IMG/VR virus record: IMGVR_UViG_3300027899_000001
Location: 62,001 to 126,000 of that record
DNA: 64,000 nt
Strand: one strand, 5' to 3'
The translations under genes were made by a program, and so were the position numbers. The stretch's first letter is position 1, and each line of letters opens with the position of its first letter. The notes under the pieces were generated by a model. The model saw only the letters and a list, made by a program, of their open reading frames with translations, was not told the DNA's origin and ran no database searches. This document shows, in pieces, positions 311-62,539 of this stretch.

Positions 311-334
311 AAATCTCCTACCAACGAGTGCTTC

Positions 335-548: not shown

Positions 549-556
549 CAAATATA
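549..556 (-). promoter_or_regulatory. Bacteroidota-type -7 element (TATATTTG) upstream of tmRNA
   Basis: Matches TAnnTTTG; lies just upstream of the predicted 5' end of the acceptor piece. Confidence 0.55.
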
Positions 557-5014: not shown

Positions 5015-5212
5015 TTATTATCATTATTAGTCATTTTAAAAACTTCCTATATGTACATTTATATAGCCTTCTTTTACTTTCTTTTGAAAAAAATCTGCAT
5101 AAATTTTTACAGAATCGCTTTCTCTACATATATGAAGGCGCCCTTCAGCCATTTCGTTTTCAAGAAATTTTTCAAAAGAACTTTTCTTTTTTCTAAATAT
5201 ACGCATTTTTAT

Positions 5213-5563: not shown

Positions 5564-5652
5564 AATTTCAATTTTAATTAATTTTTAATTTATATGAACA
5601 AAACGCGACATTGTTTTGTCACGTTTAATTTTTAATTAATTTTTAACACTTA

Positions 5653-6153: not shown

Positions 6154-6365
6154 TAGTCTAATGCATCTATTACTTCATCTAAAAGAGCTTTAATAGTAGG
6201 ATCTGTTATTTGATATTTAGCTCTAACTAATTTTTTAATTAATAATTTTTTTCTTCTGAAATCTCCTTTAAAATTAAGAGTTATTCCAAATACAACGCCT
6301 TCAAGATTGTCTCCTTTTTCAAAATCTTCATCTGAATAAATTTCATTAATAGTTTTTGCTCTCAT
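6153..6365 (-). CDS. Hypothetical protein
   Basis: Tightly packed ORF in a minus-strand operon. Confidence 0.55.
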   Translation of the reverse strand: MRAKTINEIYSDEDFEKGDNLEGVVFGITLNFKGDFRRKKLLIKKLVRAKYQITDPTIKALLDEVIDALD

Positions 6366-6366
6366 A

Positions 6367-7011: not shown

Positions 7012-7035
7012 AGCTTAAAATTTTTATTTTGCTAT

Positions 7036-19898: not shown

Positions 19899-19933
19899 AA
19901 TAATTAGTTTATTTTATATATTCAGCAAAGCAA

Positions 19934-19954
19934 AAGGAGAATGTTATTCTCCTT
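19934..19954 (-). terminator. Hairpin, probable intrinsic terminator for minus-strand transcripts
   Basis: AAGGAGAAT-GTT-ATTCTCCTT 9-bp stem; followed by TTGCTTTG on minus. Confidence 0.55.
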
Positions 19955-19971
19955 CGTTAAGTTTTTCAATG

Positions 19972-20053
19972 AATATATAAATAAAGAGGTAAGACTTTAG
20001 TAGAAGTCAGCTGACGATTTGGATAATCAGGTGTCCCTCTTTATTTATATATT
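19972..20053. other. Inverted-repeat-bounded structured element 1 (face-to-face late promoters around a two-hairpin core)
   Basis: Perfect 18-bp IR AATATATAAATAAAGAGG / CCTCTTTATTTATATATT enclosing TAA-[GACTT/AAGTC]-AG-[CTGA/TCAG]-GTGTC. Confidence 0.7.
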
Positions 20054-20079
20054 TTTACTTAAAATAAGATTTGGAAATC

Positions 20080-20979
20080 ATGAAAGAATTTAGAAAAACA
20101 GAAAATTGCTCTTTTATTTGCGAAGAATGCGGAAAAATATATGAAACTCTCAATGGATTAAGAGTACATGTTCAGCGTTCTCATACTACTAAGATATATC
20201 ATGATAAATGGTTAAAAGAAGATTTTGAGGGAAAATGTAAAACATGTGGAAACGAAACAAAATTTAAAGGAATATTGTCAGGATATTATAATTGTTGCTC
20301 TAAAAAATGTGTAGACACATATAGATATGAACAGAATAAAAAAACAAATTTAAAATTTTATGGAGTAGAAAATAATTATCAACGCGTAGATGTAAAAGAA
20401 AAAAACAAAAAACTTTGTAAAGAAAGATATGGGCACGAAAATCCTGCTCATGGAACAAACAAAGAAAAGGTTAAAAAAACTATGCTATCGCGATATAACT
20501 CTGAATATGCTTTTCAAAATAAAAATTGTAGAGAAAAATTTGAAAATACTATGTTATTAAAATATGGTCATATTTATCCTTTACAAAATACCGAAATTTT
20601 TATAAAAGCATCTAAAAGTAATATTAATGTAAACTCATTTAAAAATACAGATATATGGTATCAAGGATCCTATGAATTAGATTTTTTAGAAAAATATTAT
20701 AATATATTTCCAGATATTATCAGAGGGCCATCAATAAAATATATTTATAAAAACGAACAAAAAATTTATTATCCAGATTTTTTAATTCCATCATTAAATT
20801 TAATAGTGGAATGTAAAAATTCTTATTTATTAAAAAGAGATACAGAAATATTAAAAGAAAAGAAAAAGGCAATTATAAATAACGGATATAATTATATTAT
20901 AATTGTAAATAAAGATTATTCTGAATTTAATAATTTTTCTATAGATAAATCAGAAAATCCTGCATTTTTTTCTATTTGA
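20080..20979 (+). CDS. Free-standing endonuclease, family copy 2 (inverted orientation; likely start MKEFRK at 20080)
   Basis: CEECGKIY; YGVENNYQ; YQGSYELDFLEKYY...YYPDFLIPSLNLIVECK. Confidence 0.75.
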   Translation: MKEFRKTENCSFICEECGKIYETLNGLRVHVQRSHTTKIYHDKWLKEDFEGKCKTCGNETKFKGILSGYYNCCSKKCVDTYRYEQNKKTNLKFYGVENNYQRVDVKEKNKKLCKERYGHENPAHGTNKEKVKKTMLSRYNSEYAFQNKNCREKFENTMLLKYGHIYPLQNTEIFIKASKSNINVNSFKNTDIWYQGSYELDFLEKYYNIFPDIIRGPSIKYIYKNEQKIYYPDFLIPSLNLIVECKNSYLLKRDTEILKEKKKAIINNGYNYIIIVNKDYSEFNNFSIDKSENPAFFSI

Positions 20980-29667: not shown

Positions 29668-29907
29668 GTCCTTTTTTTGCGATTCTTTGTAAGATTCTTC
29701 TTCTGCTTCATAACACTTCTCACACCTCTTATACGGTTTTCCTGTATTTTGATTATACATAATTTTCCAAGTATGTGGCTGTAAAGGCATATGATTATCT
29801 GGATGTCCGGCATATGTTGTTTGACATTTTTCACAACCTTTGCAATCTGGAAAACTATCAGTAGTCCATGCTATTGCTTCTCCACATTTACATCTTAATG
29901 TTCTCAT
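29662..29907 (-). CDS. Small Cys-rich Zn-finger protein
   Basis: CKCG, CKGCEKC, CEKC. Confidence 0.6.
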   Translation of the reverse strand: MRTLRCKCGEAIAWTTDSFPDCKGCEKCQTTYAGHPDNHMPLQPHTWKIMYNQNTGKPYKRCEKCYEAEEESYKESQKKDS

Positions 29908-30889
29908 ATTTTTTTATTTTTGTATAATCTTTATCAATGATAATTAAATATGTATAGCCTAATGCTTTAGTATATTTTTCTTTTTTCTTATTTTGTTTTT
30001 CAAATCTATTATAATAATATTTACTTTTACATTCAATTATTAGATTTAACGATGGAATATAAAAATCAGGAAAATATATTTTATTTTTATTTTCATATTT
30101 ATATTTGATTGCTGATCCATTTTGTATGTCAGGATATTTATCATAAAATTTTTCTAAAAAATCCAATTCATATGATCCACGATAATAAATATTTGTATTT
30201 TTAAAATTTTTAGCTTTAAGCCCACTTTTTTGTTGTTTTTCAAATATTTCTTTATTTTGCATTGGATTTTCGACATCATATTTTTTTAAACAACTATTTA
30301 TTTTATGAGTTTTAACAACATTTGATGAATTTGGAGATACTGTACCATATTTTTTTAAAGACGTTTCTTGCTTTTTGGTCTTTATTTTTTTATTTTTTAA
30401 AGGATGTTCACCATATAAATTGATCATAATTTCGTTTCCTTTTTCTCTAATTTTTTTATTACTTAATCCCCATTCGCAGCCATAATTTTTAAATGTTGTT
30501 TCTTTTGATTTTTTTCTATTTGTATAATATTCATCATTGTATTTTTGTTTTTTAATTTTTTTAATTTTATTTTTAATTTTTTTTGATTGAAATACATTTT
30601 TAACACCAAATTTTTTAAAAACTTCTTCTTCTGTTCTAATCTGATTCCATTTTTTTTCGCATTCTCCTTTACAACAAGTTTTATATCCTCCTGCTATATT
30701 ATTAAATACGGTTTCTTTATTGCATATTTTGCATAACCCCTCTTCATTTTCACGTATATATTTATCAAAATATTCTTTAGCTTTATGTTTTCTTACTATA
30801 TGATTTATTATACCATGTTTAGAAATAGATGTTAACCCGCATTCTTCACATATAAAAAAATTATTTTGATTTTGTTGAAACCTTTTCAT
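29888..30889 (-). CDS. Free-standing endonuclease, family copy 3
   Basis: CEECGL..H..RKH; KYDVENPMQ; YRGSYELDFLEKFY...YFPDFYIPSLNLIIECK; late promoter at 30901-30914. Confidence 0.75.
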   Translation of the reverse strand: MKRFQQNQNNFFICEECGLTSISKHGIINHIVRKHKAKEYFDKYIRENEEGLCKICNKETVFNNIAGGYKTCCKGECEKKWNQIRTEEEVFKKFGVKNVFQSKKIKNKIKKIKKQKYNDEYYTNRKKSKETTFKNYGCEWGLSNKKIREKGNEIMINLYGEHPLKNKKIKTKKQETSLKKYGTVSPNSSNVVKTHKINSCLKKYDVENPMQNKEIFEKQQKSGLKAKNFKNTNIYYRGSYELDFLEKFYDKYPDIQNGSAIKYKYENKNKIYFPDFYIPSLNLIIECKSKYYYNRFEKQNKKKEKYTKALGYTYLIIIDKDYTKIKKYENIKM

Positions 30890-35563: not shown

Positions 35564-35983
35564 TTAATCATATTTTTTATCTAATAAAATGTTATTTAAA
35601 TAATCTTTTATATCTGGATAATAATTAAAGTAATAATATCTATGAACAGTTTCTTCATATTGTTTTTTCGTTATTTGTAATTCTTTACAAATATTACCAA
35701 TTCTTTTTCGCTTTTTATACCAAATTATAAATGTGTAGATTGCTATCAATGCTAATAAAAATGCATAAAAAATGCTAGTTATGTATAGACAATACATGGG
35801 TAGTCCTAAAAGATGTGAACTTGCAGCCATTAAAAATGGAAAAAATAAACCAAAACAAGAAATTATAACTGGCCATATATTACGAGATAAACTTACTACT
35901 GAAATATATTTTATAAAAAATAATTCACATGAACTAGGAGAGAATTTTCTATATGCTTCTTCAAATTGTTTTTTAGTTATCAT
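35564..35983 (-). CDS. Hypothetical 2-TM membrane protein
   Basis: IWPVIISCFGLFFPFLMAA and YITSIFYAFLLALIAIYTFIIW. Confidence 0.6.
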   Translation of the reverse strand: MITKKQFEEAYRKFSPSSCELFFIKYISVVSLSRNIWPVIISCFGLFFPFLMAASSHLLGLPMYCLYITSIFYAFLLALIAIYTFIIWYKKRKRIGNICKELQITKKQYEETVHRYYYFNYYPDIKDYLNNILLDKKYD

Positions 35984-36025
35984 CTACAAAATACATACTT
36001 TTTATATTTATTCATGATTTTTTAT

Positions 36026-36111
36026 GAATATATAATAAAAGCAGTAATCTTTATCTGTATAATAAAGAAACCGAAGAGGGATCAACGGCTGTCCTGCTAA
36101 ATTATATATTC
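36026..36111. other. Inverted-repeat-bounded structured element 2
   Basis: GAATATATAAT..AGCAG / CTGCT..ATTATATATTC enclosing TAA-[TCTTTAT/ATAAAGA]-AA-[CCG/CGG]-CTGTC; same architecture as 19972-20053. Confidence 0.7.
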
Positions 36112-36131
36112 TTAAAATAATAGGGGGATTC

Positions 36132-36884
36132 ATGGAAAAGAAATTTAATTATGTTTATTTAACAACAAATCTTGTTAATGGTAATCAATATGTTGGTGAT
36201 CGATCTTGTAATTGTAATCCAGAAAATGATAAATATTTAGGTAGTGGTACATATTATAAAAACGCTGAAAAACTATACGGAAAAGTAAATTTTAATAAAC
36301 AAATACTTGAATGTTTTGATACACGTGAAAAAGCTTTTAATGCTCAAGAAAAATATATTAAACAATATAATACATTAGTTCCAAACGGATATAATATAGA
36401 TCCCGTTGGTGGGCATGGAACTTATGGCGGATATTTGTCTGAAGAAACAAAATTAAAAATAGGTAATTCAAATAAAGGAAAAATCCATACAGAAGAAACA
36501 AAAAATTTATGGAAAAAACAAAGAAAAGGAAAAAATAATGGCATGTATGGTAAAGGTTATTTAATTTCTAAAGAAAAAAATGGAAGATATAATGAACCAG
36601 TATCTTCTAAAACGAAAGAAAAAATAAGTAACTCTAAAAAAGGTAAAAATACATGGATGAAAGGAAAAAATCATTCAATAAAAACAAAAGAACAAATTAG
36701 TAAAACAAAATCAAAATTAAGTTTTGAACAAAAACAAGAAATTTTTAATTCAATTAAAAATCGTAATACTAATCAAACAATAGAAGATATAATAAAAATT
36801 TTAATTATTAAATTTAATGTGTCTAGAAATACTATTTATAGAGCATATAATTATATTTACTCAATTTCTTCATTATCTTCTTGA
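36132..36884 (+). CDS. GIY-YIG homing endonuclease with NUMOD3-like repeats (inverted orientation)
   Basis: YVYLTTNLVNGNQYVG, YLGSG, EKYI, GYN; GKIHTEETK repeats. Confidence 0.85.
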   Translation: MEKKFNYVYLTTNLVNGNQYVGDRSCNCNPENDKYLGSGTYYKNAEKLYGKVNFNKQILECFDTREKAFNAQEKYIKQYNTLVPNGYNIDPVGGHGTYGGYLSEETKLKIGNSNKGKIHTEETKNLWKKQRKGKNNGMYGKGYLISKEKNGRYNEPVSSKTKEKISNSKKGKNTWMKGKNHSIKTKEQISKTKSKLSFEQKQEIFNSIKNRNTNQTIEDIIKILIIKFNVSRNTIYRAYNYIYSISSLSS

Positions 36885-38317
36885 TTATCACTATCAAATA
36901 CATCATTACCATCCCATATTATAATACCCTCTTTATCTTCAGTTATATCACCTGTTTCAAACAGATTAACTATATTTGTTTTATGTCCAATTCCACGAGC
37001 CAATGTAGGATCAGGATATTTGTTAAAGGCTTTTTCTGCTTCTTTTAATTCTTTTTCTTTTTCTTTAAGATCTCTTATTAGCGCTCTTATTGTTGCTGCA
37101 GTTGCAAAAAGTTCATCGGTTGTGAACTTTCTTGATGTCATTCTCTCTAATCGTTCAACTATTTCTTTTTCATAGTTTTTAGCTTTAAACCATTCATCGA
37201 TTTCATTATTTGTTCTAATATTAGTTTTAGTTTTTTCTAATATAAATCCTATAAATAGTTCTTTAGCATAACTAAAGTTTAATTCAAAAGATAATTTATC
37301 TCTTTCGTATAAAGTATTCTTTAGTTTTAATCTAACTACTTGCCATTTGTAATCTTCAAGATATTGCTCAATCGAATCATATGTAAGAACTTGTCCATCT
37401 TTAATGAATACTGGATTTTCAGTTACAATTACTGAAAATGCTTTTTGAACAAATCTTATTACTTCTTCCCAATCTTCCTTTGATCTTCCTATATAAGCAA
37501 TTTCTATATTTACTTTATGTTTAGAATCATCTTTAATTCTTATATTACCCTCAAATTTATTAAAAAGATAATCTAATTTTTTAAGAACGGTATCATATTT
37601 AAGAATTGGAGGAATTTCTTTAACTGTAATTTTTTTATTATCAATAGTTACGTTTGAAGAAATTAACCATGCTTTATCAACGCCTTTATATTTTTCTATA
37701 TTTCCATTAAATCCTTCAAAATAAGGTTTAACACTTTTACGAGTTCCTGCTAAAAAATCTTGAATGTCTTTCAATTTACGAGGAAGTATAGTTGTTTTAT
37801 ATCCAACAGCAATACCTACTATAGGTGTAACTAGACCAAGGGGTATATCCATCCAGAACGGATCGTACGGGCCCTCAGGTTCTCTTGTAGTAAGGTAATT
37901 ATACTTATTAAGGATACCATTAGCTGGACCTGAAAGTCTTACAGATGTGTATCTTGCTGCTGCTGGAGAAGGAGATACCTCAGATCCAAAAAATCCATAT
38001 CCTTCAAGAATTTGTAATGCATTACCAAAAGGTCGAGCTAATTTAGAGATAGCTCCTTCTAAAGATGTATTACCGTGATGATAACCATCTTCTATAGATT
38101 TACCAACAACTGTAAGTGTTTTCTGATATGCACCTGGAGAATTTTTAAGTATGAATCTTTGTACAGGAGTAAGTGCATCATAGAAACTGGGAATGCCCCT
38201 AGCTTCTAAGACATACACAGCATAATCTCTAAACTTACTATCTATAAATTTAGAAATTGGAAGACGTATTATTTTTTCTTTTTGTTTAGGCTTTGTTAGA
38301 TCTCGTTTACTCATCAA
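36857..38317 (-). CDS. gp52: Type II topoisomerase A-type subunit, T4 gp52-like
   Basis: RGIPSFYDALTPVQRFIL, YHHGNTS, AAARYT (catalytic Tyr). Confidence 0.9.
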   Translation of the reverse strand: MMSKRDLTKPKQKEKIIRLPISKFIDSKFRDYAVYVLEARGIPSFYDALTPVQRFILKNSPGAYQKTLTVVGKSIEDGYHHGNTSLEGAISKLARPFGNALQILEGYGFFGSEVSPSPAAARYTSVRLSGPANGILNKYNYLTTREPEGPYDPFWMDIPLGLVTPIVGIAVGYKTTILPRKLKDIQDFLAGTRKSVKPYFEGFNGNIEKYKGVDKAWLISSNVTIDNKKITVKEIPPILKYDTVLKKLDYLFNKFEGNIRIKDDSKHKVNIEIAYIGRSKEDWEEVIRFVQKAFSVIVTENPVFIKDGQVLTYDSIEQYLEDYKWQVVRLKLKNTLYERDKLSFELNFSYAKELFIGFILEKTKTNIRTNNEIDEWFKAKNYEKEIVERLERMTSRKFTTDELFATAATIRALIRDLKEKEKELKEAEKAFNKYPDPTLARGIGHKTNIVNLFETGDITEDKEGIIIWDGNDVFDSDNQEDNEEIE

Positions 38318-38609
38318 ATTCTTTCTTAAGTTTAAGATAACTTTCGTAACGTCTTTTCTTCATTTTTTCTTTAAAAAAGTTTTCCTCTTTTTTTCTTTTT
38401 TCAAATTCTTCATCAGTTTCTAAGAATTCTCTTTCAACTTCAAGAAACCAATGAGCATCCCAAGATTCATTTTCAGAATAAAATCCTTCATCAAATCCTG
38501 CACGTATTCTGTCTTCGGGTTGAAGTTCTATTGTTATTTCTTTATATAACACTGGACCGTCCCAGTTTTTAGTGCTGAATACGGTTTTAATTATTTTTTT
38601 CTTTTCCAT
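38307..38609 (-). CDS. Hypothetical protein (start MEKKK at 38609), possibly leaderless
   Basis: ATG lies 4 nt after a TATATTTA element. Confidence 0.6.
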   Translation of the reverse strand: MEKKKIIKTVFSTKNWDGPVLYKEITIELQPEDRIRAGFDEGFYSENESWDAHWFLEVEREFLETDEEFEKRKKEENFFKEKMKKRRYESYLKLKKEFDE

Positions 38610-38610
38610 A

Positions 38611-38660
38611 ATGTAAATATAATACAAATATTTGACAGAAAAAAATATTATGATAAAAAT
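38611..38660 (-). promoter_or_regulatory. Repeated early-promoter module
   Basis: plus-strand atgtaaatataa...tttgacagaaaaaaa shared with 57306 and 58127. Confidence 0.6.
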
Positions 38661-46265: not shown

Positions 46266-47228
46266 TTAGCTATTAAGTATAAATTTTGTATAATCTTTAT
46301 CGACAATCATTATATAATTAAAACCTTTAGAAATAGTAGCTTTTTGTTTTGCTTCTATAATTTTTTTATCTTTTTTTATAAGATATGAGTTTTTAATTTC
46401 AATTATAAGATTTAATGAAGGAATATAAAAATCAGGGAAATAAATTTTATTTTTATTATTATATCGATATTTAATCGAGGGCCCGTTTTTTAAATCTGGA
46501 TACATATTTAAAAATTTTTCAAGAAAATCTAATTCGTAAGAACCTCTATAATATATATCAATGTTTAAATATTTATGAGAATAATAAGCGCTTTTTTGTT
46601 GTTTTTCAAATATATTTTTAACTTGCCCAGGATATTCAACACCATATTTTTCTACATATATTTTTTTGATATCTTCTTTTATTTTTTTAGATTGAAATAC
46701 ATTATCTACACCCCATTTTTCTTTACAAGTTTTTTTTACTTTTTCTCTATTTGAATAATATTCATTTCCATATCTTTCTTTTTTTGTTTGTTTTGATTTT
46801 TCTTTTGATTTTTCTAATTGAAATGAATTTTCTACATCATAACGTTCTTTAAGTGTTTTTTTGCAGGTTTCCTGATTCCATCCATTGGGCACACATTTTA
46901 AAGAACAATATTTATTCGGCGCGCCTCTCGTAAAATTTACAGATTTTCCACAAGTTTTACACGTTGGCGTTCCGTATTTTTTAATATAATTTTTCTTTCT
47001 CCATTCTGGTCCTTTATGGCCTACTGCAAAATCATGAAAAATATTATCTCGATATTCGGGCATTTCATCACAATATCCGCATTTGCATTTTGGCGATATT
47101 CCATTTAATACATATTCTATATGATAATTCTTAGAAGATATATGATGGTGTTGTTTTAAATGATTATTAAATTTTCTTAAAGCTAAAAACTCTTCATTAC
47201 AAATTTGACATTTAATGTTTGATTTCAT
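46266..47228 (-). CDS. Free-standing endonuclease, family copy 4
   Basis: CQIC..H...HH; KYGVEYPGQ; YRGSYELDFLEKF...YFPDFYIPSLNLIIEIK; late promoter at 47230-47245. Confidence 0.75.
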   Translation of the reverse strand: MKSNIKCQICNEEFLALRKFNNHLKQHHHISSKNYHIEYVLNGISPKCKCGYCDEMPEYRDNIFHDFAVGHKGPEWRKKNYIKKYGTPTCKTCGKSVNFTRGAPNKYCSLKCVPNGWNQETCKKTLKERYDVENSFQLEKSKEKSKQTKKERYGNEYYSNREKVKKTCKEKWGVDNVFQSKKIKEDIKKIYVEKYGVEYPGQVKNIFEKQQKSAYYSHKYLNIDIYYRGSYELDFLEKFLNMYPDLKNGPSIKYRYNNKNKIYFPDFYIPSLNLIIEIKNSYLIKKDKKIIEAKQKATISKGFNYIMIVDKDYTKFILNS

Positions 47229-47304: not shown

Positions 47305-48141
47305 TTATTGTGTTAAAAAACCTACTTTTTTAGGTACGGGTTTTGCGTGATTATCTGTTCCATAATAATAAATATCTGCAAGAGTCATAGGCTCTGTAAC
47401 ATTAATTTCTTTATGACCAAGTTTAACTAAAAGAGCTTTTGATTTTTCGATTGAAAGTTTTTCAAATTTATAATTCATTAAAAGTCTTCCTTTTCTTGTA
47501 AGAGCTTCATCTATATTCTTAGTTCCTGTGTTAAAGGTTGCTACTATAGAAATATTCAAACAATCTGAAAGTAAACCATCAGTAAGATTAAGAACATTAC
47601 TTACAGCAGAACTTCTTCCCCCATTATTTCTTTTTTCAAGAGCGGGTTCAGCATCTTCAATTATAAGAACTGAATCATTATTTCTCATAAGAAAAGGAAT
47701 AAAGGCTGGATCTGTAATAGAATCAACCATATCAGGAGATATGAAAATGATGTTCTTCTTAAGTTTAGATGTAAGATACCTAATATAAGTAGTATTATGA
47801 CTAATAATATTATTTGTATAATATAATTTATTAGAATCAACATCTAATTCTAAATCATACATATTTTCACGCTCATCTAATTTTATAACTTGTTGAACAT
47901 TTTCATATCCCGTTTTTGTTAAAATTATATCTCCTATTTTTAAGTTTTTTACATATATTTCAACATTATTATTTAATAATACAATGTGATTATCTGCACA
48001 TCTTAATTGATATTTATCTGTTTTTAAAAGATACACATCATATTTAATAGTTTTATGAATAGCATCAATATTAACCCATCCATCCGGAGTTAATACTTCA
48101 TAATCTTCTAATTTTTTAGATTTTATAAATTTTTTATTCAT
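47305..48141 (-). CDS. AAA ATPase C-terminal part, preceded by a 116-aa IntC (split intein)
   Basis: CADNH block B, MYDLEL, IISHN|TTYIRYL; then IIEDAE Walker B, LNLTDG, ALTRKGR. Confidence 0.9.
   Translation of the reverse strand: MNKKFIKSKKLEDYEVLTPDGWVNIDAIHKTIKYDVYLLKTDKYQLRCADNHIVLLNNNVEIYVKNLKIGDIILTKTGYENVQQVIKLDERENMYDLELDVDSNKLYYTNNIISHNTTYIRYLTSKLKKNIIFISPDMVDSITDPAFIPFLMRNNDSVLIIEDAEPALEKRNNGGRSSAVSNVLNLTDGLLSDCLNISIVATFNTGTKNIDEALTRKGRLLMNYKFEKLSIEKSKALLVKLGHKEINVTEPMTLADIYYYGTDNHAKPVPKKVGFLTQ
47794..48141 (-). mobile_element. IntC (116 aa) of an atypically split intein
   Basis: Ends His-Asn before Thr+1. Confidence 0.85.
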
Positions 48142-49039
48142 ATTTTATAAAGTTTATACATTTTAATAAAGTATTTTGATAATTAAATTTATTTAAATCA
48201 TCTTCCCAAATAATTAAAATTTTATATCCAAGAGATTGCAGCATTTCAATTTTAAATTTATCTTTTTGCCATATTTCTTTTGCAGTTAATATTTTAGTTT
48301 TACTTATTGCAATTATAGAATTTTCAAAATAATATTTAGGATTTGCGTGATAAAAATTGCCATTCAATTCTATTATTTTATTTTCATATAAAAGATCAAC
48401 ATAAAATCCTTTATTTTTATTATAACGTATCCATTTTTCTTCTATTCCAAAATAAAGTTTTTTATCTATATTATTTTGTAAATCATTAAAAAATTTTTCG
48501 GATAATTTACTATATCTTCTAAATAAACTGTTTCTTCTTCCTTTACCTCTTTCATGTGATAATATTTTTACTCGTTCCTCTCCAAATTTTTGTGTTAATT
48601 GATCTTTTGTTTTTCCACGAGTTTTATTAATTTCAATTCTTTCACTATCAGATTTTGAATAATATGTATTTTTTCTTTTCTGTAAAATATTATTTTTTTT
48701 CTCTTCAGAAAAATTATCTATAGAAAGTTTAGCCCTAACCCCATCTATCATTTTTTTTATTTCATCTGGATCAGTTATATTCTTTTTTATCCAATATTCT
48801 TTTTCCCATGGCATAAGCATATTTTCATAAGAATCTTTTGATCTTTTTTTTGCATTTTCAGATTGTATTTGTTTAATTTTTTCAATGGCTTCATTTTTAG
48901 AAAACCCGCGTTTAATCCAAAATTCTATGCAAAATCTAGAAGTTTCTTTTCTTTTTTGCAATGCAATATTTTCAGCTTCATTTTCATTGTATCCTTTTTT
49001 TATCCAATATTCTTTATCGTAAATAGTTATTTTTTTCAT
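48134..49039 (-). CDS. Vsr/DUF559-like endonuclease between the split-intein halves of the AAA gene
   Basis: KEYWIKKG repeats; FYVDL..ENKIIELNGNFYHANP...WQKD...IWE; late promoter at 49047-49062. Confidence 0.75.
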   Translation of the reverse strand: MKKITIYDKEYWIKKGYNENEAENIALQKRKETSRFCIEFWIKRGFSKNEAIEKIKQIQSENAKKRSKDSYENMLMPWEKEYWIKKNITDPDEIKKMIDGVRAKLSIDNFSEEKKNNILQKRKNTYYSKSDSERIEINKTRGKTKDQLTQKFGEERVKILSHERGKGRRNSLFRRYSKLSEKFFNDLQNNIDKKLYFGIEEKWIRYNKNKGFYVDLLYENKIIELNGNFYHANPKYYFENSIIAISKTKILTAKEIWQKDKFKIEMLQSLGYKILIIWEDDLNKFNYQNTLLKCINFIKYE

Positions 49040-50012: not shown

Positions 50013-50500
50013 TTTTTTCTTTTTGCCGGTGAATCCCCAAATGCTATTTCAAGAAATCTATCAGCGCTTCTATCATTAATAACTGAGAATAATATCTTAT
50101 TGTTCATTACATTTTCCCAATCTTCTAATGAAAGAGAACCAAGTCCTTTAAGATAATTTACATTTGTTACTTTTGTTTTTTCTATAAATTCTGAATATTC
50201 TTCTAAAGTATAAAAATACTTTCTTTCTTTTCCAACTGTGCAAACTACTAATGGCGTTATTATTCTATAAAGTTTCTTCTTTTCAATTATATGAGGAAAC
50301 CATTTATGAAAGAAACTAATAATAAGAGAACTAATATGCTGTCCATCGCAATTATGTGCTAATATTTTTGTATTTTCATTTAAATAAACATAAAAGGTGT
50401 GACTATCTTTTACTGTTATATCATACATTATTAAATTTTTTCTATATTTTTTAATATTCGCGGGTTGCACTAATTTATATTTTGTTAAATCTATATTCAT
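49994..50500 (-). CDS. Topoisomerase II B-type subunit C-terminal part, preceded by a 50-aa IntC
   Basis: MYDITVKDSHTF...ILAHN|CDGQHISSL...YLKGLGS. Confidence 0.9.
   Translation of the reverse strand: MNIDLTKYKLVQPANIKKYRKNLIMYDITVKDSHTFYVYLNENTKILAHNCDGQHISSLIISFFHKWFPHIIEKKKLYRIITPLVVCTVGKERKYFYTLEEYSEFIEKTKVTNVNYLKGLGSLSLEDWENVMNNKILFSVINDRSADRFLEIAFGDSPAKRKKWLEGK
50351..50500 (-). mobile_element. IntC (50 aa) of a split intein
   Basis: YDI block F; ends His-Asn before Cys+1. Confidence 0.88.
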
Positions 50501-51489
50501 ATTTCTATTATTATATTTCTGTGTTTAATTTCATCTAATATTTGTAATAAATATTCTTCTGTAAGTTTTGTTGATTCCCATATAATTAATATTGCAATAT
50601 TTTTTTTGAATTCATGATTAAATAAATAATTAATTCTATTTTTATCTTTTTCCCAAATTTCATATGCAAATCTTTTCATTATTTTATGAAAATAATCTTT
50701 TGGATAATATTTAGAATTACAGTGCCAATAATCGCCATAAAATTCTATTATGATATTTAAATCCGGTATATAAAAATCTATTGCTCCATTTTTTCCAATT
50801 TCATTTTCATATTTATATTCTTCTACATAATAAATATTACATTTATTAAGAATATCACCAACTATTTTAGATTTAATAGATTTATTAGGCCCAAACGCGG
50901 AATGTTTCTTTTTTCTAAAAATATCATATTTTTCTAGGCCTTCAATTTCTCCATATTTTTCAATATACCATGATAATGTATTAGCTTTAGATATTTTAGC
51001 ATTTCGTTTTTCATATTTTTTAATACCTTCTTCTTTACCATATTTTTTAACATAATTTTCTAAATTAGCTCTCCATGTAAGCTCCCTAAATCCTTTACTT
51101 TTATCATGTTTAACATCAGTAATATTTTTTTTATGTAATAAACTTAAGTATAGAGAATTTGCGCCAATATGTTCAAATCTTTTTTTATCATACGGTTCAT
51201 TAAATATTTTTTGACTAATATTTTCTTTACATTGTAATGTATGACAAAAATATCCATCGTTATAACTTACTTTATACAATTTATTTTTATGATCAATTTC
51301 AAACGTTGGAATAGCATATTTATTGCAAAATCCGCATATTTCTAATTTAAAATTTGGAGTTAAATTTTTATAATATTTTTTAACATACTCATTAAGTAAT
51401 AAGTCGTGCACGCGTTTTACATGGGATCCTATATAAGTTCCATTATTAGTAACCTCTTTTCCGCAAATTAAACATCTAATCTTTTCCAT
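50497..51489 (-). CDS. Vsr/DUF559-like endonuclease between the split-intein halves of the topoisomerase gene
   Basis: CLICG; KKYGKEEG repeats; IDFYIPDLNIIIEFYGDYWHCN...IWE; late promoter at 51502-51517. Confidence 0.75.
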   Translation of the reverse strand: MEKIRCLICGKEVTNNGTYIGSHVKRVHDLLLNEYVKKYYKNLTPNFKLEICGFCNKYAIPTFEIDHKNKLYKVSYNDGYFCHTLQCKENISQKIFNEPYDKKRFEHIGANSLYLSLLHKKNITDVKHDKSKGFRELTWRANLENYVKKYGKEEGIKKYEKRNAKISKANTLSWYIEKYGEIEGLEKYDIFRKKKHSAFGPNKSIKSKIVGDILNKCNIYYVEEYKYENEIGKNGAIDFYIPDLNIIIEFYGDYWHCNSKYYPKDYFHKIMKRFAYEIWEKDKNRINYLFNHEFKKNIAILIIWESTKLTEEYLLQILDEIKHRNIIIEI

Positions 51490-51533: not shown

Positions 51534-53267
51534 TTATTCTTTTTTAAGAAGTAAAAAATCAGTTTTTTTCAAATCTTTAGCAAAAATTTCTTGTAATTTT
51601 TCATTTCTACATACTATTAAAATATGATTTTCTGAACAAATTAATTTTTCATTATTAATTTCTATTTCAATATATTTTTCTTTTTTTGTTTTTATTATTT
51701 TTTCGATAGTTTTATATTCATTGGTGTGTGTTAAAATTTCATCATTATAGGTTAAATCTTTAATTTTTTTAAATCCATCTTTTGTAATAATTAAATGGTC
51801 TTCATCAAGACAATCTTCATCTGTAGCAATTATTATTTTGTCATAAACTGGTAATTTATCTTTGCCGGGTTCTATTTCAAGAATGCTCATTATATCTAAC
51901 CATTCAGCATTTCCTGTTAAATCTGATAATTTTCTTGCATTTTTAACCTTTCCTTTAAGAGCATATACTGCGTCAGTTTCAGAATCTCTTGCTTGTTTTA
52001 CTGAACCTGCTGCTGAAAGTCCTTCAGTAATATATATGCATCCCTTGTATTTTGAAGCAGGACTAAATTTATCAGATATCTTTCTTTTCGATTGCTTCTG
52101 AGCCTTTCTAATCTTAACTAAATTTTCATTATGGAGTCTATCTTCTATAGATTTTTCGATGCTTCTTGCTATATCAGATTTACTCAAGAATCTTATTAAC
52201 TTACTATGAAAAGATTCTTTCATCAATTCTTCTATTTCTCCACGACCTGTTGCAAATTTTGTTTTATTTTGGTCTGCAAATCTCATTAATTGCGACGGAA
52301 GATTAAGAGATATAAGAGTTTCATAGAAATGGTGAGCTAAATTATACTTAAAATATTCATTACCCCAATCATTAACTACTTTCTGATGTATTCCTGTACA
52401 GTTAGATCCATTAACAAATGATAAAGAACAAGAATTTTCATATGCTTCCCAAAGATATATTGTCCCCATATTGTTAGTTACAGTTATATGATCTTTAGGA
52501 ATAAAATCTGTCGTTATATCTATATCAAATTGTTTTCCTTCTTTTATAAAATATCCTTTGAAATCTAATTTATTAATAATAGGATCGTTCTTTATTAAGA
52601 AGTATTTGAATGAAAGATAAGTTGTTATTAAATCTATATCCCATTTAAGATCTAGAAATATTTTCTTTGATGGAATAAAGGTTATTTTAGTTCCAAGTTT
52701 ATCTGAAGATTCTTTTTTTCTTATTTCTTCATTTACTACTACGAAATCATCCCATGTAAATTTTACATAATGAGTTTTATTAACAGTAGTTACTGCGAAT
52801 TTCTCAGATAAAATATTAGTTACGGCAGCACCTAAACCAAAAGTTCCAAGTATATTAGTTGATGTATCAGTAAAATTAGAACCTGCGTGAAGTTCTTCAA
52901 GAGCAGTTCTTACTACATTTTTCTTTGTTTTACTATGTTTTTTAGCTGCATCATGAAATCCTAAACCTTCATCTATCACAATTATTTCATTATTATCAAG
53001 ATTAACTTTAACTGTAACATTTTTCATTTTACCCTTACATCGTTTAGCTTCATCTAAAGAATTTTCTAAAATTTCATAAAATAATTGATAAAATCCAGGT
53101 GAATATTTTTTTTCTAATGAAATTAATTTATTATTAATAACAAGCGGATATTTACTATCTTCTATTTCAGATATTTGCCCAACATAAAGAGTAGGCCTTA
53201 ATCGTATAGCGGTAAAATTATCTAACGCTATTATTTCTTTTGAATTTCCTGTATTATTTTTTAACAT
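51534..53267 (-). CDS. Topoisomerase II B-type (gp39/GyrB-like) N-terminal part ending in a 92-aa IntN
   Basis: EILENSLDE, DEGLG, GTFGLGA (GHKL), TEGLSA, ALKGKV, IIIATDED|CLDEDH. Confidence 0.9.
   Translation of the reverse strand: MLKNNTGNSKEIIALDNFTAIRLRPTLYVGQISEIEDSKYPLVINNKLISLEKKYSPGFYQLFYEILENSLDEAKRCKGKMKNVTVKVNLDNNEIIVIDEGLGFHDAAKKHSKTKKNVVRTALEELHAGSNFTDTSTNILGTFGLGAAVTNILSEKFAVTTVNKTHYVKFTWDDFVVVNEEIRKKESSDKLGTKITFIPSKKIFLDLKWDIDLITTYLSFKYFLIKNDPIINKLDFKGYFIKEGKQFDIDITTDFIPKDHITVTNNMGTIYLWEAYENSCSLSFVNGSNCTGIHQKVVNDWGNEYFKYNLAHHFYETLISLNLPSQLMRFADQNKTKFATGRGEIEELMKESFHSKLIRFLSKSDIARSIEKSIEDRLHNENLVKIRKAQKQSKRKISDKFSPASKYKGCIYITEGLSAAGSVKQARDSETDAVYALKGKVKNARKLSDLTGNAEWLDIMSILEIEPGKDKLPVYDKIIIATDEDCLDEDHLIITKDGFKKIKDLTYNDEILTHTNEYKTIEKIIKTKKEKYIEIEINNEKLICSENHILIVCRNEKLQEIFAKDLKKTDFLLLKKE
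51537..51812 (-). mobile_element. IntN (92 aa) of a split intein
   Basis: CLDEDHLI block A; CSENH block B. Confidence 0.88.
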
Positions 53268-54198
53268 AATTTTCTATAAATTCTTTATAGTTTTTATTTA
53301 AGATAAGAATATAATTATATCCTAATTTTTTTGTTGCTTTTTCTTTTTCAAAAATTTCATTTTCATTCATTTTTAAGGTATAAGATCCTTTTATTTCTAT
53401 TACTAAATTTTCAGATGGTAGATAAAAATCAGAATGATATACTCTATTTTTTCCATCAAGGTTATATTTTATAGACGGCCCATTTTGCATATCATTAAAT
53501 AAAGTATAAAAATTTTCTAAAAAGTCAAATTCATATGACGCTTGATACGTTAAATTACTATCTTTATATTGATGTAATAGCATCCTAGTTTTAAATGCTT
53601 TATCATATATTCCTTTATCTTGTAAAGGATTTTCGACTCCATATTTTTTTAAATAATGTTGTTTTAAATTATTTTGAATAATTTTGCTAGAATATGGATT
53701 TTTTGTTCCATAATTTTTTTTACATGTTTTTTCTGCTTTTAATTTAACATCTTTATTAGCTAATGTACATGCAGTTCCATATTTTTTTATATTAGTATTT
53801 TCAAGTTTATCTCTAACTATTTTTGATTTATTTGGATTATCTACTCCATAATTTTCTTTCCACGTTTCTTTCATTTTATTTTTACAATCTTCTCTTTGAA
53901 AATTGTTTTCTACTCCATAAGTGTGTAATAATGTTTCTTTTCGAGTTTCATTTGCAATTTTTATACTATGATTATTACAACAACCTTTAATATATCCATA
54001 AGCTAAACTTTTAAACTTAGTTTGTTTATTACATATTTTACATAATTCTTCGTTATCTTCTTTTAACCATTTATCAAAATATATTTTAGTGTTATCGTGC
54101 TTTCGTTGAATATGTTTACTTAAAGACATTAAATTTTTACATATTTTTTGGCATTCTTCACAAATATAAAAATCATTTTCTTGTTTAAATTTTTTCAT
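53254..54198 (-). CDS. Free-standing endonuclease, family copy 5
   Basis: CEECQK..H..RKH; YGVENNFQ; YQASYEFDFLENFY...YHSDFYLPSENLVIEIK. Confidence 0.75.
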   Translation of the reverse strand: MKKFKQENDFYICEECQKICKNLMSLSKHIQRKHDNTKIYFDKWLKEDNEELCKICNKQTKFKSLAYGYIKGCCNNHSIKIANETRKETLLHTYGVENNFQREDCKNKMKETWKENYGVDNPNKSKIVRDKLENTNIKKYGTACTLANKDVKLKAEKTCKKNYGTKNPYSSKIIQNNLKQHYLKKYGVENPLQDKGIYDKAFKTRMLLHQYKDSNLTYQASYEFDFLENFYTLFNDMQNGPSIKYNLDGKNRVYHSDFYLPSENLVIEIKGSYTLKMNENEIFEKEKATKKLGYNYILILNKNYKEFIENYVKK

Positions 54199-56415: not shown

Positions 56416-57273
56416 TTAAATTGAAGAAAAATAACTTTCAGCTATTGTCCAAAGAGTCTTATTAAATTCTATATTACGAGTGGCATTTGTTATTCCACGA
56501 GGTCTTGTTCTACGACCATTTACAGTATGTCTTTCGAATTCACCTTTAACCAATCTTTCCTGAACTATATTAAATACTGTCCAAAGATCTTCTTTTTTAT
56601 CTTCTCCTCTTAAAGGCTCAACTATCTGTGTTGGATTCATTATTGCAGTAACTTTCTTAAAATCTACAGTTCCATCAGGCTGTATAAAAACATGAGGTTC
56701 ACGATTAGCTATAGCCTTTATAACGAATTCTTCTCTCTGATCGTTATTAAGAACTACTTGTTGCATATCACTTATATGCTTACCTATTATAGAATACTGT
56801 TCTGCTACCACAGACATAAGTTGTTTAAGTTCTTCAACGTCTATTCCAACGTGACGAAGTTTAACTGAGGTGAACATTCCAGGCATCGCCACTATAAGTC
56901 CATTGGTGCAAACTAAACGGAAAATACCCATATGCCCCATTGCAGGAGATCCTCCATTATGAGAGTTGTCAAGGATAAACTGTGGTTTAACGTTATCTCC
57001 TTTAAGATTCATAAAATCAAAGCCAAGATCGGGGTTGAAGAAACGTATCATATGACGGGCATATGGGCTTACACCATTCTGTTTGGCAAATGCAGGAAGC
57101 CAACCAGTTTTTTCAAAAGCGGCAATAAGTTCATCTGTTGGAACAAATGAATATCGAGTTGAAAGTTTAGGACTTTCATGAGTAGAAAAAGCTGCGGGAA
57201 CACGAATTTTTAATTCGTCAATACTTGTTGCTTTGTAACCAATCGATGTTAAGGGATTTTCAATGTGTGCCAT
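56416..57273 (-). CDS. DUF932-family protein
   Basis: RYSFVPT, RHMIRF, NSHNGG...GIFRLVCTNGLI. Confidence 0.75.
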   Translation of the reverse strand: MAHIENPLTSIGYKATSIDELKIRVPAAFSTHESPKLSTRYSFVPTDELIAAFEKTGWLPAFAKQNGVSPYARHMIRFFNPDLGFDFMNLKGDNVKPQFILDNSHNGGSPAMGHMGIFRLVCTNGLIVAMPGMFTSVKLRHVGIDVEELKQLMSVVAEQYSIIGKHISDMQQVVLNNDQREEFVIKAIANREPHVFIQPDGTVDFKKVTAIMNPTQIVEPLRGEDKKEDLWTVFNIVQERLVKGEFERHTVNGRRTRPRGITNATRNIEFNKTLWTIAESYFSSI

Positions 57274-57305: not shown

Positions 57306-57368
57306 TGTAAATATAATACTTTAATTTGACAGAAAAAAATTATTTACAGATTATTTTCAAATTATTTT
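57306..57368 (-). promoter_or_regulatory. Repeated early-promoter module
   Basis: tgtaaatataa...tttgacagaaaaaaa..tttac.gattattttcaaattatttt, near-identical to 58127-58190. Confidence 0.65.
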
Positions 57369-58101
57369 AATAATCTTTTACACAACGAACTGACATACCT
57401 GCTTCTTTAGGATATGGATAATCTGTTTCAAAGGATCCATATAAATTTTTAAAATATTTATGCAATATGATATTCCATCCTTTATTTTCTACTGGTGCAA
57501 ATCCATTTTGTGTTACATATTCCGTTGATGTCCACCAAAAACCAATACGTTCAAAATTAAGAAATTCTCCTGTATAATCTATAAAACCTCCAGGAAGCGC
57601 AGTAAACCCACTTTCATTAGTTGCTCCAACGTTTGGTTCTTCCCAATGCTCAAATCCCGCCTCTTTTAACTTACCGCCTGCAATACTGTCACCACCCAAA
57701 TAATCTGCTAATTGCATCCATTCATTATATGAAGGAACATGCCAACCTGTCGGACATAATTTTCCAGTATTAACTGCATGCCAATTATATAATTTTCCAT
57801 ATGTTTCTGAATTGATAATGTTTCCATTACATTCAGTATATGCAGGAGTAATAGAAGTACTCCAGATTTCCGCATTGTTGACAAAAGGAATAGGCGTTCC
57901 ATCATTGAAAGTTGTTGTTTTCAAATTTTCTACCATCCATATTTGATAGCCTATTGTTTTTTTAGTATAGTTATTACCATCAATATCAACTATTGACGAA
58001 TCAATTGGTTTAACATATACAATTTCTATTTTCGTACAGCTAATTAACAAAATAAAAACTATTGTTAATAAACTGATGACAAATAAATTTAATTTTTTCA
58101 T
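57367..58101 (-). CDS. FISUMP-domain (Fibrobacter succinogenes major paralogous domain) lipoprotein
   Basis: Lipobox LISC; DIDGNNY..IG.QIWM.ENL, YGKLYNW, LCP.GWHVPS, GF.ALPGG, WWTST, SVRCVKD. Confidence 0.85.
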   Translation of the reverse strand: MKKLNLFVISLLTIVFILLISCTKIEIVYVKPIDSSIVDIDGNNYTKKTIGYQIWMVENLKTTTFNDGTPIPFVNNAEIWSTSITPAYTECNGNIINSETYGKLYNWHAVNTGKLCPTGWHVPSYNEWMQLADYLGGDSIAGGKLKEAGFEHWEEPNVGATNESGFTALPGGFIDYTGEFLNFERIGFWWTSTEYVTQNGFAPVENKGWNIILHKYFKNLYGSFETDYPYPKEAGMSVRCVKDY

Positions 58102-60410: not shown

Positions 60411-61952
60411 TTAAGAAAATTTAATAACTTCTTCATCACTCATATTTTTTATTTTTTCCTCTAATCTAAAGTCTTCTATCGCTATTTTATCTGCAATTTC
60501 TTTTTCTTCTATATTATGCTGTATACTAACAAAAACGTCAAATAATGCTTTTACTTTAATATCAGCAACATTTGTTCCTGCCAATGGTATTTTAACTGTA
60601 TGCCCATTATTGTATGTTATTTCAACATCTTCACTGGCATCAAATCCAGTTTCTCGCAAAGCTTCTATAATTGATTGAATTTTTTCAGTTAAATCTTCTC
60701 CTATTATGCCATAACAAGGAACTATTATCCAAGCATATGGTTTCTTAAAGTCTTCAAGATCATCATATTTTATAACTCCTGAATACAAGTTTTTCCTGTC
60801 ATCTTTTTGTAATCTACTTGCTCTTCCTAATGTTTGTAAAAATTTACCCGTTGTCATAGTGTTCATTGGCATAATTCCTGTTATACCTGGAACATCTATG
60901 CCTTCAGATAATATATTTATGTGAAAAATGATTGCGTCATCTTTATCATCCATACCTTGTAATTCTTCAAGAAATTTTTCACGTCTAACAACTTCTCCAT
61001 TAATACGTGGGCTAAATGCTGAAGATATATCAAATATTTTTAAATTGTCTCTTAATGCTAAAAATTTCTGCATCTTCGGATGTGTCACGTACTTATTCAG
61101 ATCTTCTGAACCGCCAGTAACAACAAGTAATTTTGCTCCATTATTACAATTCATTTTATGTTTAATGAAAGCATCTTTAATAGCATTCACATCTATATCT
61201 ATCTTATCGTATACGTCTTCATCATTTTTGTTTTCAAGGTCTGTAAATTGTAATCTCGGACGTAATATTTCACCAGCGATAATCATTTCTAATGGAGTTT
61301 TTTCATAAATGATAGGACCAAATAGATCGCTGTTATTCATTCCTAATCCTTTATCTGAAAAAGTTTCTTTCAATGTTGCAGTGAAATAATATTTACGTAA
61401 TGAGTTGAATTGTTTCACTGCGTTTACTTCATTTTCTAAACATATCCAACTAAATTCCTTTGAAACTAAGTATTGTGCTTCATCACATAAAGTCATATAA
61501 ACTGGAATTTGTGCATCCATAATTCTTTCTGAAGAATCATAAGTACCAAAAATAATCAAAGGAACGTTTTCAAGTCTTGCTTTTTCATATTCTTCAGCTA
61601 TTTTTATATATGAAGTCGTTGATGTTAATTGTCTAAATGGCAAATCAACTGTCCACATTCTTTTTGTATCATCAACTGTTTTTCCTGAATGTACTATAAG
61701 ATAATGGCAATCCTTTTTTTGTAATAATAATGTTTCTTTTATAACATTATAAAGTTGATTACATAAAATAATTCTTGGTGCCAAAATAACAAAAACTGGA
61801 ATTTCTTGATGTTTAAATCCAGCATCAATATTATTAGAAATAGCATATGATTCTATATATGTTTTTCCTGATCCTGTTGGAAGATGAATAATGCCTTCAT
61901 TACTATTTTCAATAGCATTAAGTGCTTCTATTTGATGTTGTCTAAGTTTCAT
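60411..61952 (-). CDS. SF2 helicase-like ATPase (restriction-enzyme Res/Type ISP-like)
   Basis: LRQHQ, LPTGSGKT, CDEAQ, FTAT, LSEGIDVP, QTLGRASR. Confidence 0.85.
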   Translation of the reverse strand: MKLRQHQIEALNAIENSNEGIIHLPTGSGKTYIESYAISNNIDAGFKHQEIPVFVILAPRIILCNQLYNVIKETLLLQKKDCHYLIVHSGKTVDDTKRMWTVDLPFRQLTSTTSYIKIAEEYEKARLENVPLIIFGTYDSSERIMDAQIPVYMTLCDEAQYLVSKEFSWICLENEVNAVKQFNSLRKYYFTATLKETFSDKGLGMNNSDLFGPIIYEKTPLEMIIAGEILRPRLQFTDLENKNDEDVYDKIDIDVNAIKDAFIKHKMNCNNGAKLLVVTGGSEDLNKYVTHPKMQKFLALRDNLKIFDISSAFSPRINGEVVRREKFLEELQGMDDKDDAIIFHINILSEGIDVPGITGIMPMNTMTTGKFLQTLGRASRLQKDDRKNLYSGVIKYDDLEDFKKPYAWIIVPCYGIIGEDLTEKIQSIIEALRETGFDASEDVEITYNNGHTVKIPLAGTNVADIKVKALFDVFVSIQHNIEEKEIADKIAIEDFRLEEKIKNMSDEEVIKFS

Positions 61953-62539
61953 ATTTTTATGGTATTTAAACTTTTTTTAACTAAATCTCTAAATGAATTC
62001 CAAAAAAGAATATTATTATCAACTAATTCTCTAAGATTTTCATATCCTAAACATCTTACTTTTTTTGTAAACATTTCATCTTCTGTAAAATAATGTAAGC
62101 CTTCTGCTGTCGTAATAATAAGCATATTATTTTTACTTTTAGGATCTACATCATATCTTAATACAGATGCTGAAGTAAAATTACTTAAATGATCTTGGTT
62201 AGCTGTTAATAACACTCTATTATTTGAACGATATTTAACTTGTACTGTAGCGGGTTTTCCGTCTATTCCTATACCTTTTCCATCTACTCCAGTATCATCA
62301 CTTGTAATGGGAATATATTTTCCTATAGCTATGCGATTATCTGCAGGAGATAATTTAATTAATGCTTCTACAAATAATTCAAATCCATCTCCTTTATATT
62401 TTTCAGGCTCATATCTATTAGGAAATAATAATGATTGTTGTTCAAGACGAGTACAAAAAGTTGAAAGCTTTTTTACATTTACTAGTAATCCATTTATATC
62501 ATGTGAATTAAATAAAAAAGGATGAATTAAGGTTTCCAT
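61949..62539 (-). CDS. Mrr-like PD-(D/E)xK restriction endonuclease
   Basis: KGDGFELFVE, DDTGVDG, VQVKY; ATGA-coupled to the helicase. Confidence 0.7.
   Translation of the reverse strand: METLIHPFLFNSHDINGLLVNVKKLSTFCTRLEQQSLLFPNRYEPEKYKGDGFELFVEALIKLSPADNRIAIGKYIPITSDDTGVDGKGIGIDGKPATVQVKYRSNNRVLLTANQDHLSNFTSASVLRYDVDPKSKNNMLIITTAEGLHYFTEDEMFTKKVRCLGYENLRELVDNNILFWNSFRDLVKKSLNTIKI

Follow-up and report, generated by a model that had tools for sequence, protein, structure and literature searches.

Two homing-endonuclease genes in an uncultured giant phage are each preceded by a branched inverted repeat, and the question raised by this locus is whether these repeats constitute a conserved regulatory element and, if so, how it could act on the gene that follows. 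The window analysed here is a 64,000-nucleotide stretch of IMGVR_UViG_3300027899_000001, a 405,016-bp AT-rich uncultured phage for which a blastn search of GenBank phages found no close relative. A first-pass annotation had described the repeat at 36026-36111 (element 2) as a three-stem structure sharing its architecture, but not its stem sequences, with a second repeat upstream (element 1, 19970-20056). We found the sequence to be exactly as described. The arm GAATATATAAT (36026-36036) faces ATTATATATTC (36101-36111); P1 is GCAG/CUGC (36041-44 with 36094-97), extending to AAAGCAG at 36038-36044, which pairs with 36094-36100; UAA is at 36045-47; P2 is UCUUUAU/AUAAAGA (36048-54 with 36062-68) closing a CUGUAUA loop; AA is at 36069-70; P3 is CCG/CGG (36071-73 with 36086-88) with a 12-nt loop; and CUGUC is at 36089-93. 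Element 1, at 19969-20053 (+) in our annotation, has the same order of arm, P1 (19983-89 with 20036-42), UAA, P2 (19993-20008), AR, P3 (20011-20030), (C/G)UGUC (GUGUC here, 20031-35), P1' and inverted arm, while all three stems differ in sequence. Shuffled controls had been proposed beforehand as a way to reject the structure; both strands of both elements folded better than all 200 dinucleotide shuffles, with z from -3.6 to -6.8.

Next, we asked whether the two elements belong to a wider family. Pattern scans of viral contigs and metagenomes, together with protein-anchored loci, yielded at least 36 distinct copies (retrieved loci are denoted by L and a number) of a conserved 65-base three-stem element that travels with homing-endonuclease genes in a group of giant AT-rich phages. 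A first scan with an arm-only pattern gave mostly chance hits. The metagenome scan recovered at least 7 new copies, and most of it was absorbed by an unrelated, highly repeated G+C-rich palindromic element of about 98 nt, flanked by AATATATAAGG / CCTTATATATT, at L174, L215, L260 and about 40 other human-gut metagenome loci. All copies come from uncultured sequences, most were found with patterns that required parts of the element, and the metagenome and cellular-genome scans were not exhaustive. A covariance model built from 14 copies scored the two window copies at 69 and 62 bits (62 bits for element 1), with the next best site in the window at 14.9 bits. In cellular genomes, the loci returned by the downstream pattern (at least 120) were all chance matches: a regular expression found nothing in the 120, and the covariance model gave no hit at E<=0.01 in the 100 loci on which it was run, in 737 kb of cellular DNA.

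Across the 36 distinct copies in a model-based alignment, 91.6% of cells are paired against 37-56% when partners are slid, 18 of 19 pairs change on both sides, and none of 500 shuffles reaches the observed covariation score. In P1, the three junction-proximal variable pairs co-vary (CG/UA/GC/AU, AU/GC/UA and GC/AU), while the closing G-C is invariant in 36 of 36 copies. All 7 modelled pairs of P2 (36048-36068) change on both sides, with 94.3% of cells paired, and all 3 pairs of P3 (36071-36088) are compensatory. The junction bases are nearly fixed: J1/2 (36045-36047) is U-N-A rather than UAA (UUA 24, UAA 11, UGA 1), J2/3 (36069-36070) is AA in 34 of 36 copies, and J3/1 (36089-36093) is CUGUC (GACAG on the minus strand) in 35 of 36 copies. 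Thus the observation made in the first-pass annotation is real and far from chance. The GGAU that it listed as conserved is, however, not a conserved motif, but part of a loop that varies with the downstream ribosome-binding site.

No family of Rfam 15 matches the element. At the gathering thresholds, the whole window gave only a permuted tmRNA at 335-516, and local scans at E<=10 gave only chance-level hits, the best being cow-rumen-4 at 21.3 bits against a threshold of 48.5, matching the outer hairpin of element 1 only. Hammerhead, twister, pistol, hatchet, purine and other three-way-junction riboswitches and C4 were among the families covered. ARAGORN likewise detected no tRNA or tRNA-like cloverleaf, but only the tmRNA at 244-556 (-), a permuted, two-piece-type tmRNA (Rfam RF04321, 64.5 bits) with tag peptide GENSYALQMAA*. 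Literature searches found no description of the element. A self-cleaving ribozyme, one of the alternatives raised beforehand, or a ligand-sensing RNA in the leader could be suggested by the compact three-way junction with about 10 conserved junction bases and by the fact that small ribozymes are often found near phage genes. Nothing supports it, though: no ribozyme or riboswitch model is similar even at E<=10, a variable, gene-matched loop is not expected of a catalytic or ligand-binding core, and no expression platform is evident. Cleavage and ligand binding were not assayed, and we consider this reading very unlikely. A hammerhead reading was rejected by eye, since element 1 has CUGACGA but there is no GAAA, and element 2 lacks the motif. 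Resemblances to integron attC sites, tRNA-like elements, MITEs, the I-TevI cleavage motif and T7 primase sites were considered and dropped for lack of the defining partner features.

We then examined the genomic context of the copies. Every copy lies 18-30 nt upstream of a homing-endonuclease gene from one of three unrelated families: zinc finger plus DUF7487 (18 copies), GIY-YIG-like plus NUMOD3 (9) and HNH-like (7), with two further genes decayed or cut. The element is retained next to decayed endonuclease genes in L332 (a 25-codon remnant), L326 (76 aa) and L272 (frameshifted). The gene following element 2 (36132-36884 (+), 250 aa) carries NUMOD3 (Pfam, 8.7e-16) and matches the PHROG 314 homing endonuclease (3.7e-35); its N-terminal YVY...YVG is GIY-YIG-like by eye, although Pfam did not call the GIY-YIG domain itself at E<=0.001, and no related solved structure was found. 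The gene following element 1 (20080-20979 (+)) encodes a zinc finger plus DUF7487 (Pfam, 1.2e-27) and matches PHROG endonuclease families. As had been claimed, both plus-strand endonuclease genes of the window carry the element. In 25 of the 26 copies with both flanks readable, both neighbours lie on the opposite strand, and the 3' end of the gene overlaps the convergent neighbour. The gene at 36132-36884 is divergent from its left neighbour (35564-35983 (-)), which has its own promoter-like motif at 36000-36017 (minus strand), and overlaps by 28 nt its right neighbour, a topoisomerase II subunit gene (36857-38317 (-); DNA_topoisoIV, Pfam 1.8e-36). The exception, L297, also in the 405-kb genome, is co-oriented with both neighbours. 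Whether inverted endonuclease genes elsewhere in this genome carry the element had been suggested as a check: the genome holds five copies, with several different loop/ribosome-site sequences, which argues for RNA-RNA specificity rather than one protein. At L159 (4027-4760), two elements in opposite orientation flank one 179-aa gene, each leading outward into its own endonuclease gene.

To determine what had been inserted, we compared the locus with relatives. In L029 and L030, the topoisomerase gene is followed after about 30 nt by the homologue of 35564-35983, an empty site indicating that element plus endonuclease gene is one inserted cassette. Moreover, the same element and loop/ribosome-site class precedes GIY-YIG-like, DUF7487 and HNH-like genes, so the module boundary is the start codon. 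The cassette at 36000-36884 is flanked by two copies of a promoter-like target, GA(A/G)TAAATATA. The element does not behave as a miniature inverted-repeat transposable element, since all 36 copies occupy one position relative to an endonuclease start codon and the window has no other copy.

The outer inverted repeat had been read as a simple RNA stem, which our analysis does not support. The left arm (36024-36041 (+), ATGAATATATAATAAAAG) is a promoter-like motif pointing towards the endonuclease gene. Including an ATG prefix that takes no part in pairing, the motif (consensus ATGAATATATAAAATAAA) lies 4-15 nt before the ATG of many window genes, including the portal gene and three co-oriented DUF7487 endonuclease genes at 29888-30889, 46266-47228 and 53254-54198 (all -). 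The window is dense in co-oriented genes of this type, also including 48134-49039 and 50497-51489 (-; PHROG 22677, function unknown). These carry the motif alone, 4-12 nt before an ATG and with no Shine-Dalgarno sequence, which suggests near-leaderless mRNAs, and co-oriented homologues elsewhere also have only this motif. Left arms average 12.9 bits on a matrix built from the window sites, which is the top 0.01% of window 18-mers. The motif is called a promoter only from its position and its likeness to the T4 late promoter TATAAATA, which it contains or resembles. The right arm, which with the P1 3' strand spans 36094-36111, is an inverted copy of the left-arm motif, U-rich on both strands after P1. 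Read on the minus strand it is AAGAATATATAATTTAGC (10.4 bits). Right arms average only 8.7 bits and could simply be pairing partners; however, read on the minus strand they match the motif or a resident variant, GAATAAATAT, at the cost of mismatches with the left arm. In copies found without using the arms they often read GAATAAATAT, a variant seen upstream of resident genes. Between the right arm and the ribosome site lies a conserved box, TTAAAATAA (36112-36120), which is present in nearly all copies and equals the 3' half of the simple promoter-like motif. A short conserved AAAAGTTTT (plus strand), of unknown role, lies just outside the left arm of element 1, L160, L149, L151, L203, L301 and L303. 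The arm pair is a more general module than the three-way junction, since the same inverted arms flank plain G+C, terminator-like hairpins in the viral contigs L058/L086 and L099, and a different, longer core in L055. A second recurring upstream motif, TTTTTTTCTGTCAAA, then about 16 nt, then TTTACAYTACAGA, precedes the genes at 38307-38627, 56416-57273, 57367-58101 and 61949-62539 (-); it may be another promoter class, and it shares CTGTC with the junction of the element.

The new finding concerns the P3 loop, which, together with the 3' strand, carries a copy of the Shine-Dalgarno-to-AUG region of the cassette's own gene and co-varies with it. In element 2, the loop is AAGAGGGAUCAA followed by CGG, against the real site AUAGGGGGAUUCAUGG, which with the start codon spans 36121-36134. 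In element 1, the ribosome site GAUUUGGAAAUC (20068-79) is copied in the P3 loop at 20016-20030, the pair being GAUUUGGAUAAUCAG and GAUUUGGAAAUCAUG. Other classes include AGAGUUAA, AAGGUUUAA, GAUAGAC, GGAAAGA and GGAUAGA. Loops matched their own sites better than those of other classes (p=0.0005). To test the rule prospectively, we searched with TGTCC...TAAAATAA...ATCATGAA, a pattern that uses neither the arms nor the loop. The 12 new distinct copies all obeyed the rule, including new classes (AGAGAGA, ACUGUUA, AAGGUAAA, AAGGUGAA, GGGUAGA, GGAUAAG): the own site ranked first in 11 of 12, and 0 of 200,000 permutations reached the observed mean. Close relatives also differ by the same single change in both places: L334 against L329 (A/G), L325 against L315 (A/G), L320 against L322 (A/G) and L166 against L159b (UUU/UU).

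One could explain the paired sequences at the DNA level, with the inverted repeat acting as a recombination or cruciform module that moves or shuffles endonuclease cassettes, and the two ribosome-site copies being direct repeats kept alike by gene conversion. In favour of this, no credible G.U pair occurs on the plus strand, the same element class is joined to different gene families at the ATG, the cassette is flanked by the promoter-like targets described above, and PeSL cassettes offer a precedent (PMC4122927). However, conversion between 8-12-bp repeats 45 bp apart is unlikely to explain at least four independent coordinated changes, conserved unpaired junction bases and a strand-asymmetric fold point to RNA, and all copies sit in one fixed position relative to a gene start, unlike a free mobile repeat. 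We regard this explanation as improbable.

If the loop copy acts through RNA, the next question is on which strand. On the plus strand, no complementary partner of the ribosome site exists at a consistent place, and the real site is mostly unpaired in the folds of 24 copies. Pairing of CUGUCC with the loop as a pseudoknot, or its use as a general anti-Shine-Dalgarno, works only for the GGAUAG/GGGUAG classes and not for the AAGGUU classes. CUGUCC plus TAAAAT as a sigma-70 promoter was rejected because the spacing, by our count, varies from 18 to 24, and translational bypass as in T4 gene 60 was rejected because no upstream reading frame enters the element. The only complementary sequence in the cassette is the minus strand of P3. 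The predicted duplex of the minus-strand P3 hairpin with its own site averages -12.6 kcal/mol, against -7.1 for foreign sites (p=0.0002), and covers positions -14 to +4; for element 2 it is -19.9 kcal/mol. Complementarity of an exposed loop to the target's ribosome site, a feature of antisense RNAs of the IS10 or type I toxin-antitoxin kind, is therefore present in prediction. The minus-strand minimum-energy fold reproduces all three helices in 27 of 36 copies, against 6 of 36 for the plus strand, giving a candidate minus-strand RNA at 36036-36102 (-) with the same three-way junction read in reverse. On this strand, the conserved AA and CU become an A-U and a G.U pair, the UU of J2/3 pairing with the AG of GACAG, which lengthens P3. 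These strand arguments are suggestive, not decisive: the energy advantage of the minus strand is small (0.9 kcal/mol, p=0.08), and substitution types between loop copy and real site did not clearly favour G.U-tolerated changes (21 against 14), a result that leaves the strand undecided. Downstream of element 1 on the minus strand, a terminator-like hairpin (AAGGAGAAT...ATTCTCCTT, 19934-19954) lies before the next gene's own promoter-like motif (19913-19923), and would end an RNA of about 110 nt that starts at the right arm.

Alternatively, the plus-strand leader may act in cis, with the three-way junction in the endonuclease mRNA using the copy as a decoy or standby site for 30S subunits, or as the start of a short leader reading frame, to tune or time translation. 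The element is always in the same orientation as the gene, whatever the neighbours do, including in L297, and the left arm is the strongest promoter-like site. In 8 of 36 copies (L127, L303, L297, L320, L322, L324, L337 and L318), the loop copy keeps an AUG. By our reading, it opens a 5-17-codon frame (M-L-S...) that ends in the TTAAAATAA box or overlaps the endonuclease AUG (AUCAUGA; L318, L337). Against this, binding a ribosome needs only a Shine-Dalgarno sequence, not base-for-base identity at non-SD positions such as GAUAGAC or ACUGUUA; 28 of 36 copies have lost the AUG; the plus strand rarely folds into the conserved structure; and the real site is already unpaired. This alternative seems unlikely.

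Taken together, the first-pass interpretation is partly supported. It had proposed a conserved RNA structure rather than a simple duplication, acting as a cis-regulatory RNA, a ribozyme, a sense/antisense switch controlling toxic nucleases or a small mobile promoter cassette. The conserved structure with compensatory changes holds, and the element behaves as a small mobile regulatory cassette attached to nuclease genes of unrelated families. Of the alternatives, the sense/antisense switch fits best, owing to the ribosome-site copy in the P3 loop and the better fold of the minus strand. Our analysis demonstrates the structure, the cassette (promoter-like motif, three-way junction, inverted copy of the motif, TTAAAATAA box, ribosome site and endonuclease gene, in this order) and the copy rule, whereas the promoters, the transcripts and the repression are inferences. 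In the model that we tentatively favour, while holding it less likely than not, the two arms act as face-to-face promoters about 65 bp apart. The left one would make the endonuclease mRNA, and the right one, or read-through from the surrounding minus-strand operon, would make a minus-strand RNA that folds into the same three-way junction and displays, in a 10-14-nt hairpin loop, a sequence complementary to the Shine-Dalgarno-to-AUG region of the mRNA. Pairing of that loop, with the ribosome site 45 nt downstream and, perfectly, with the leader, would block ribosome binding and keep the toxic nuclease low, which is the logic of IS10 RNA-OUT or of type I toxin-antitoxin pairs. Because the target site and its complement both lie upstream of the ATG, the cassette would work with any endonuclease gene, which would explain why the same element class is joined to three gene families. 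P1 and the arms would form only in transcripts that start outside the element, where the branched hairpin, followed by a U-rich tract on either strand, probably terminates or processes incoming transcripts, so that the gene depends on its own promoter. No transcript, start site or promoter activity has been observed, and no expression data exist. In addition, with T4-like or sigma-70-like spacing, the start would fall in the last bases of P1's 5' strand, so self-initiated RNAs would lack P1; a minus-strand RNA is perfectly complementary to the leader, so pairing there would compete with the imperfect ribosome-site pairing; and the model does not explain why nearly all copies sit with inverted genes, while one cassette (L297) is co-oriented with both neighbours.

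Another view is that the element is only an insulator and timing device: a branched hairpin flanked by A-rich and U-rich tracts, acting as a two-way terminator that stops incoming transcripts, while transcripts starting at the embedded promoter lack the 5' arm and pass, the loop copy being a relic. This is the idea of the T4 late promoter in a hairpin, without ribosome-site sequestration (PMC2988022). If the start site is where T4 spacing predicts, P1 and the arms can pair only in read-through RNAs. U-rich tracts follow P1 on both strands, simple hairpins flanked by the same arms occur in other contigs, and for inverted genes the element lies between the two diverging transcription units. Nevertheless, this view explains neither the invariant junction bases nor the coordinated evolution of loop and ribosome site, the terminator scan does not call the element, and a plain G+C hairpin would do the job. 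We consider it as unlikely as the plus-strand alternative.

Among known systems, the element would work most like the hairpins that control T4-type homing endonucleases (I-TevI, I-TevII, I-TevIII, segB, Aeh1 mobE and seg43 of phage 25; PMC2988022). These also lie directly upstream of a phage homing-endonuclease gene, and, as with seg43(25), the hairpin stops just short of the ribosome site. The T4-type hairpins have a late-type promoter inside the 5' arm, so that the full structure exists only on transcripts that start further upstream. In our copies, however, the 3' arm does not pair with the Shine-Dalgarno sequence or AUG, as the real site lies 10-35 nt beyond the hairpin and is not sequestered; the centre is a conserved three-way junction with invariant junction bases; one loop holds a co-varying copy of the ribosome site; and the 3' arm is an inverted copy of the promoter-like motif. 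As for the embedded late promoter, the left arm carries the motif, with an exact TATAAATA in element 1, but no start site has been mapped, so that the match does not settle whether late transcripts fail to form the hairpin. The element spreads like the PeSL/PmSL promoter-stem-loop cassettes of T4-like phages (PMC2839356, PMC4122927), which are small composite modules that recur in one genome and mark points where unrelated genes are exchanged, as our element does. A PeSL is a simple terminator stem-loop followed by a sigma-70-type early promoter (TTGACA-N17-TATAAT-like) next to ORFan genes, whereas here the promoter-like motif is of late type and lies inside the stem, the core is branched and the partner is always an endonuclease gene; a consensus scan found no sigma-70 promoter placed after the hairpin and no terminator on the element.

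The element would also work like IS10-type antisense control. In IS10 RNA-IN/RNA-OUT and in type I toxin-antitoxin or restriction-modification antisense control, the harmful nuclease of a mobile element is held down by a small structured antisense RNA made from a face-to-face promoter, and a hairpin loop starts pairing over the ribosome site. A review of the topic is PMC3874152. There, the overlap contains the ribosome site itself, while here it lies upstream and contains a copy, so the proposed antisense RNA would act on a site that it does not overlap. None of this was shown experimentally, and the evidence for an opposite-strand promoter giving a discrete small RNA consists of the right-arm motif scores and the hairpin following element 1, activity not having been measured. 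P1/P7 c4 RNA (Rfam C4 family) is a phage regulatory RNA whose loops match a ribosome site a short distance away in the same transcription unit, but c4 lies on the same strand as its target and is processed from the same transcript, and there is no sequence or structure similarity.

Homing endonucleases are selfish and potentially toxic, and how free-standing ones are kept harmless, especially when inserted against the flow of transcription, is known for only a few T4 genes. This family offers a compact regulatory module with clean covariation and a built-in rule, that the loop equals the ribosome site, and appears to be exchanged among three nuclease families. A bolder reading, which we consider possible but less likely than not, is that of a natural, portable and 'programmable' translational regulator: a new class of phage antisense RNA built on a conserved three-way-junction scaffold, whose one variable loop is matched to the ribosome site of whatever nuclease gene the cassette carries, with several mutually orthogonal versions coexisting in one 405-kb genome. 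If the rule reflects RNA-RNA control, the family is a ready-made set of orthogonal translational switches, and a marker for finding endonuclease cassettes in uncultured giant phages. Even if the mechanism differs, a structured element whose loop tracks a nearby ribosome site is an unusual and well-supported observation.

In three relatives (L029:3626-3868 and 5001-6242; L030:165-416 and 1606-2763; L031:5001-5231 and 5929-7083), the topoisomerase gene homologous to 36857-38317 is split near residue 84 by a 0.7-1.2-kb insert, which could be another endonuclease, intron or intein site, while the copy in the window is uninterrupted.
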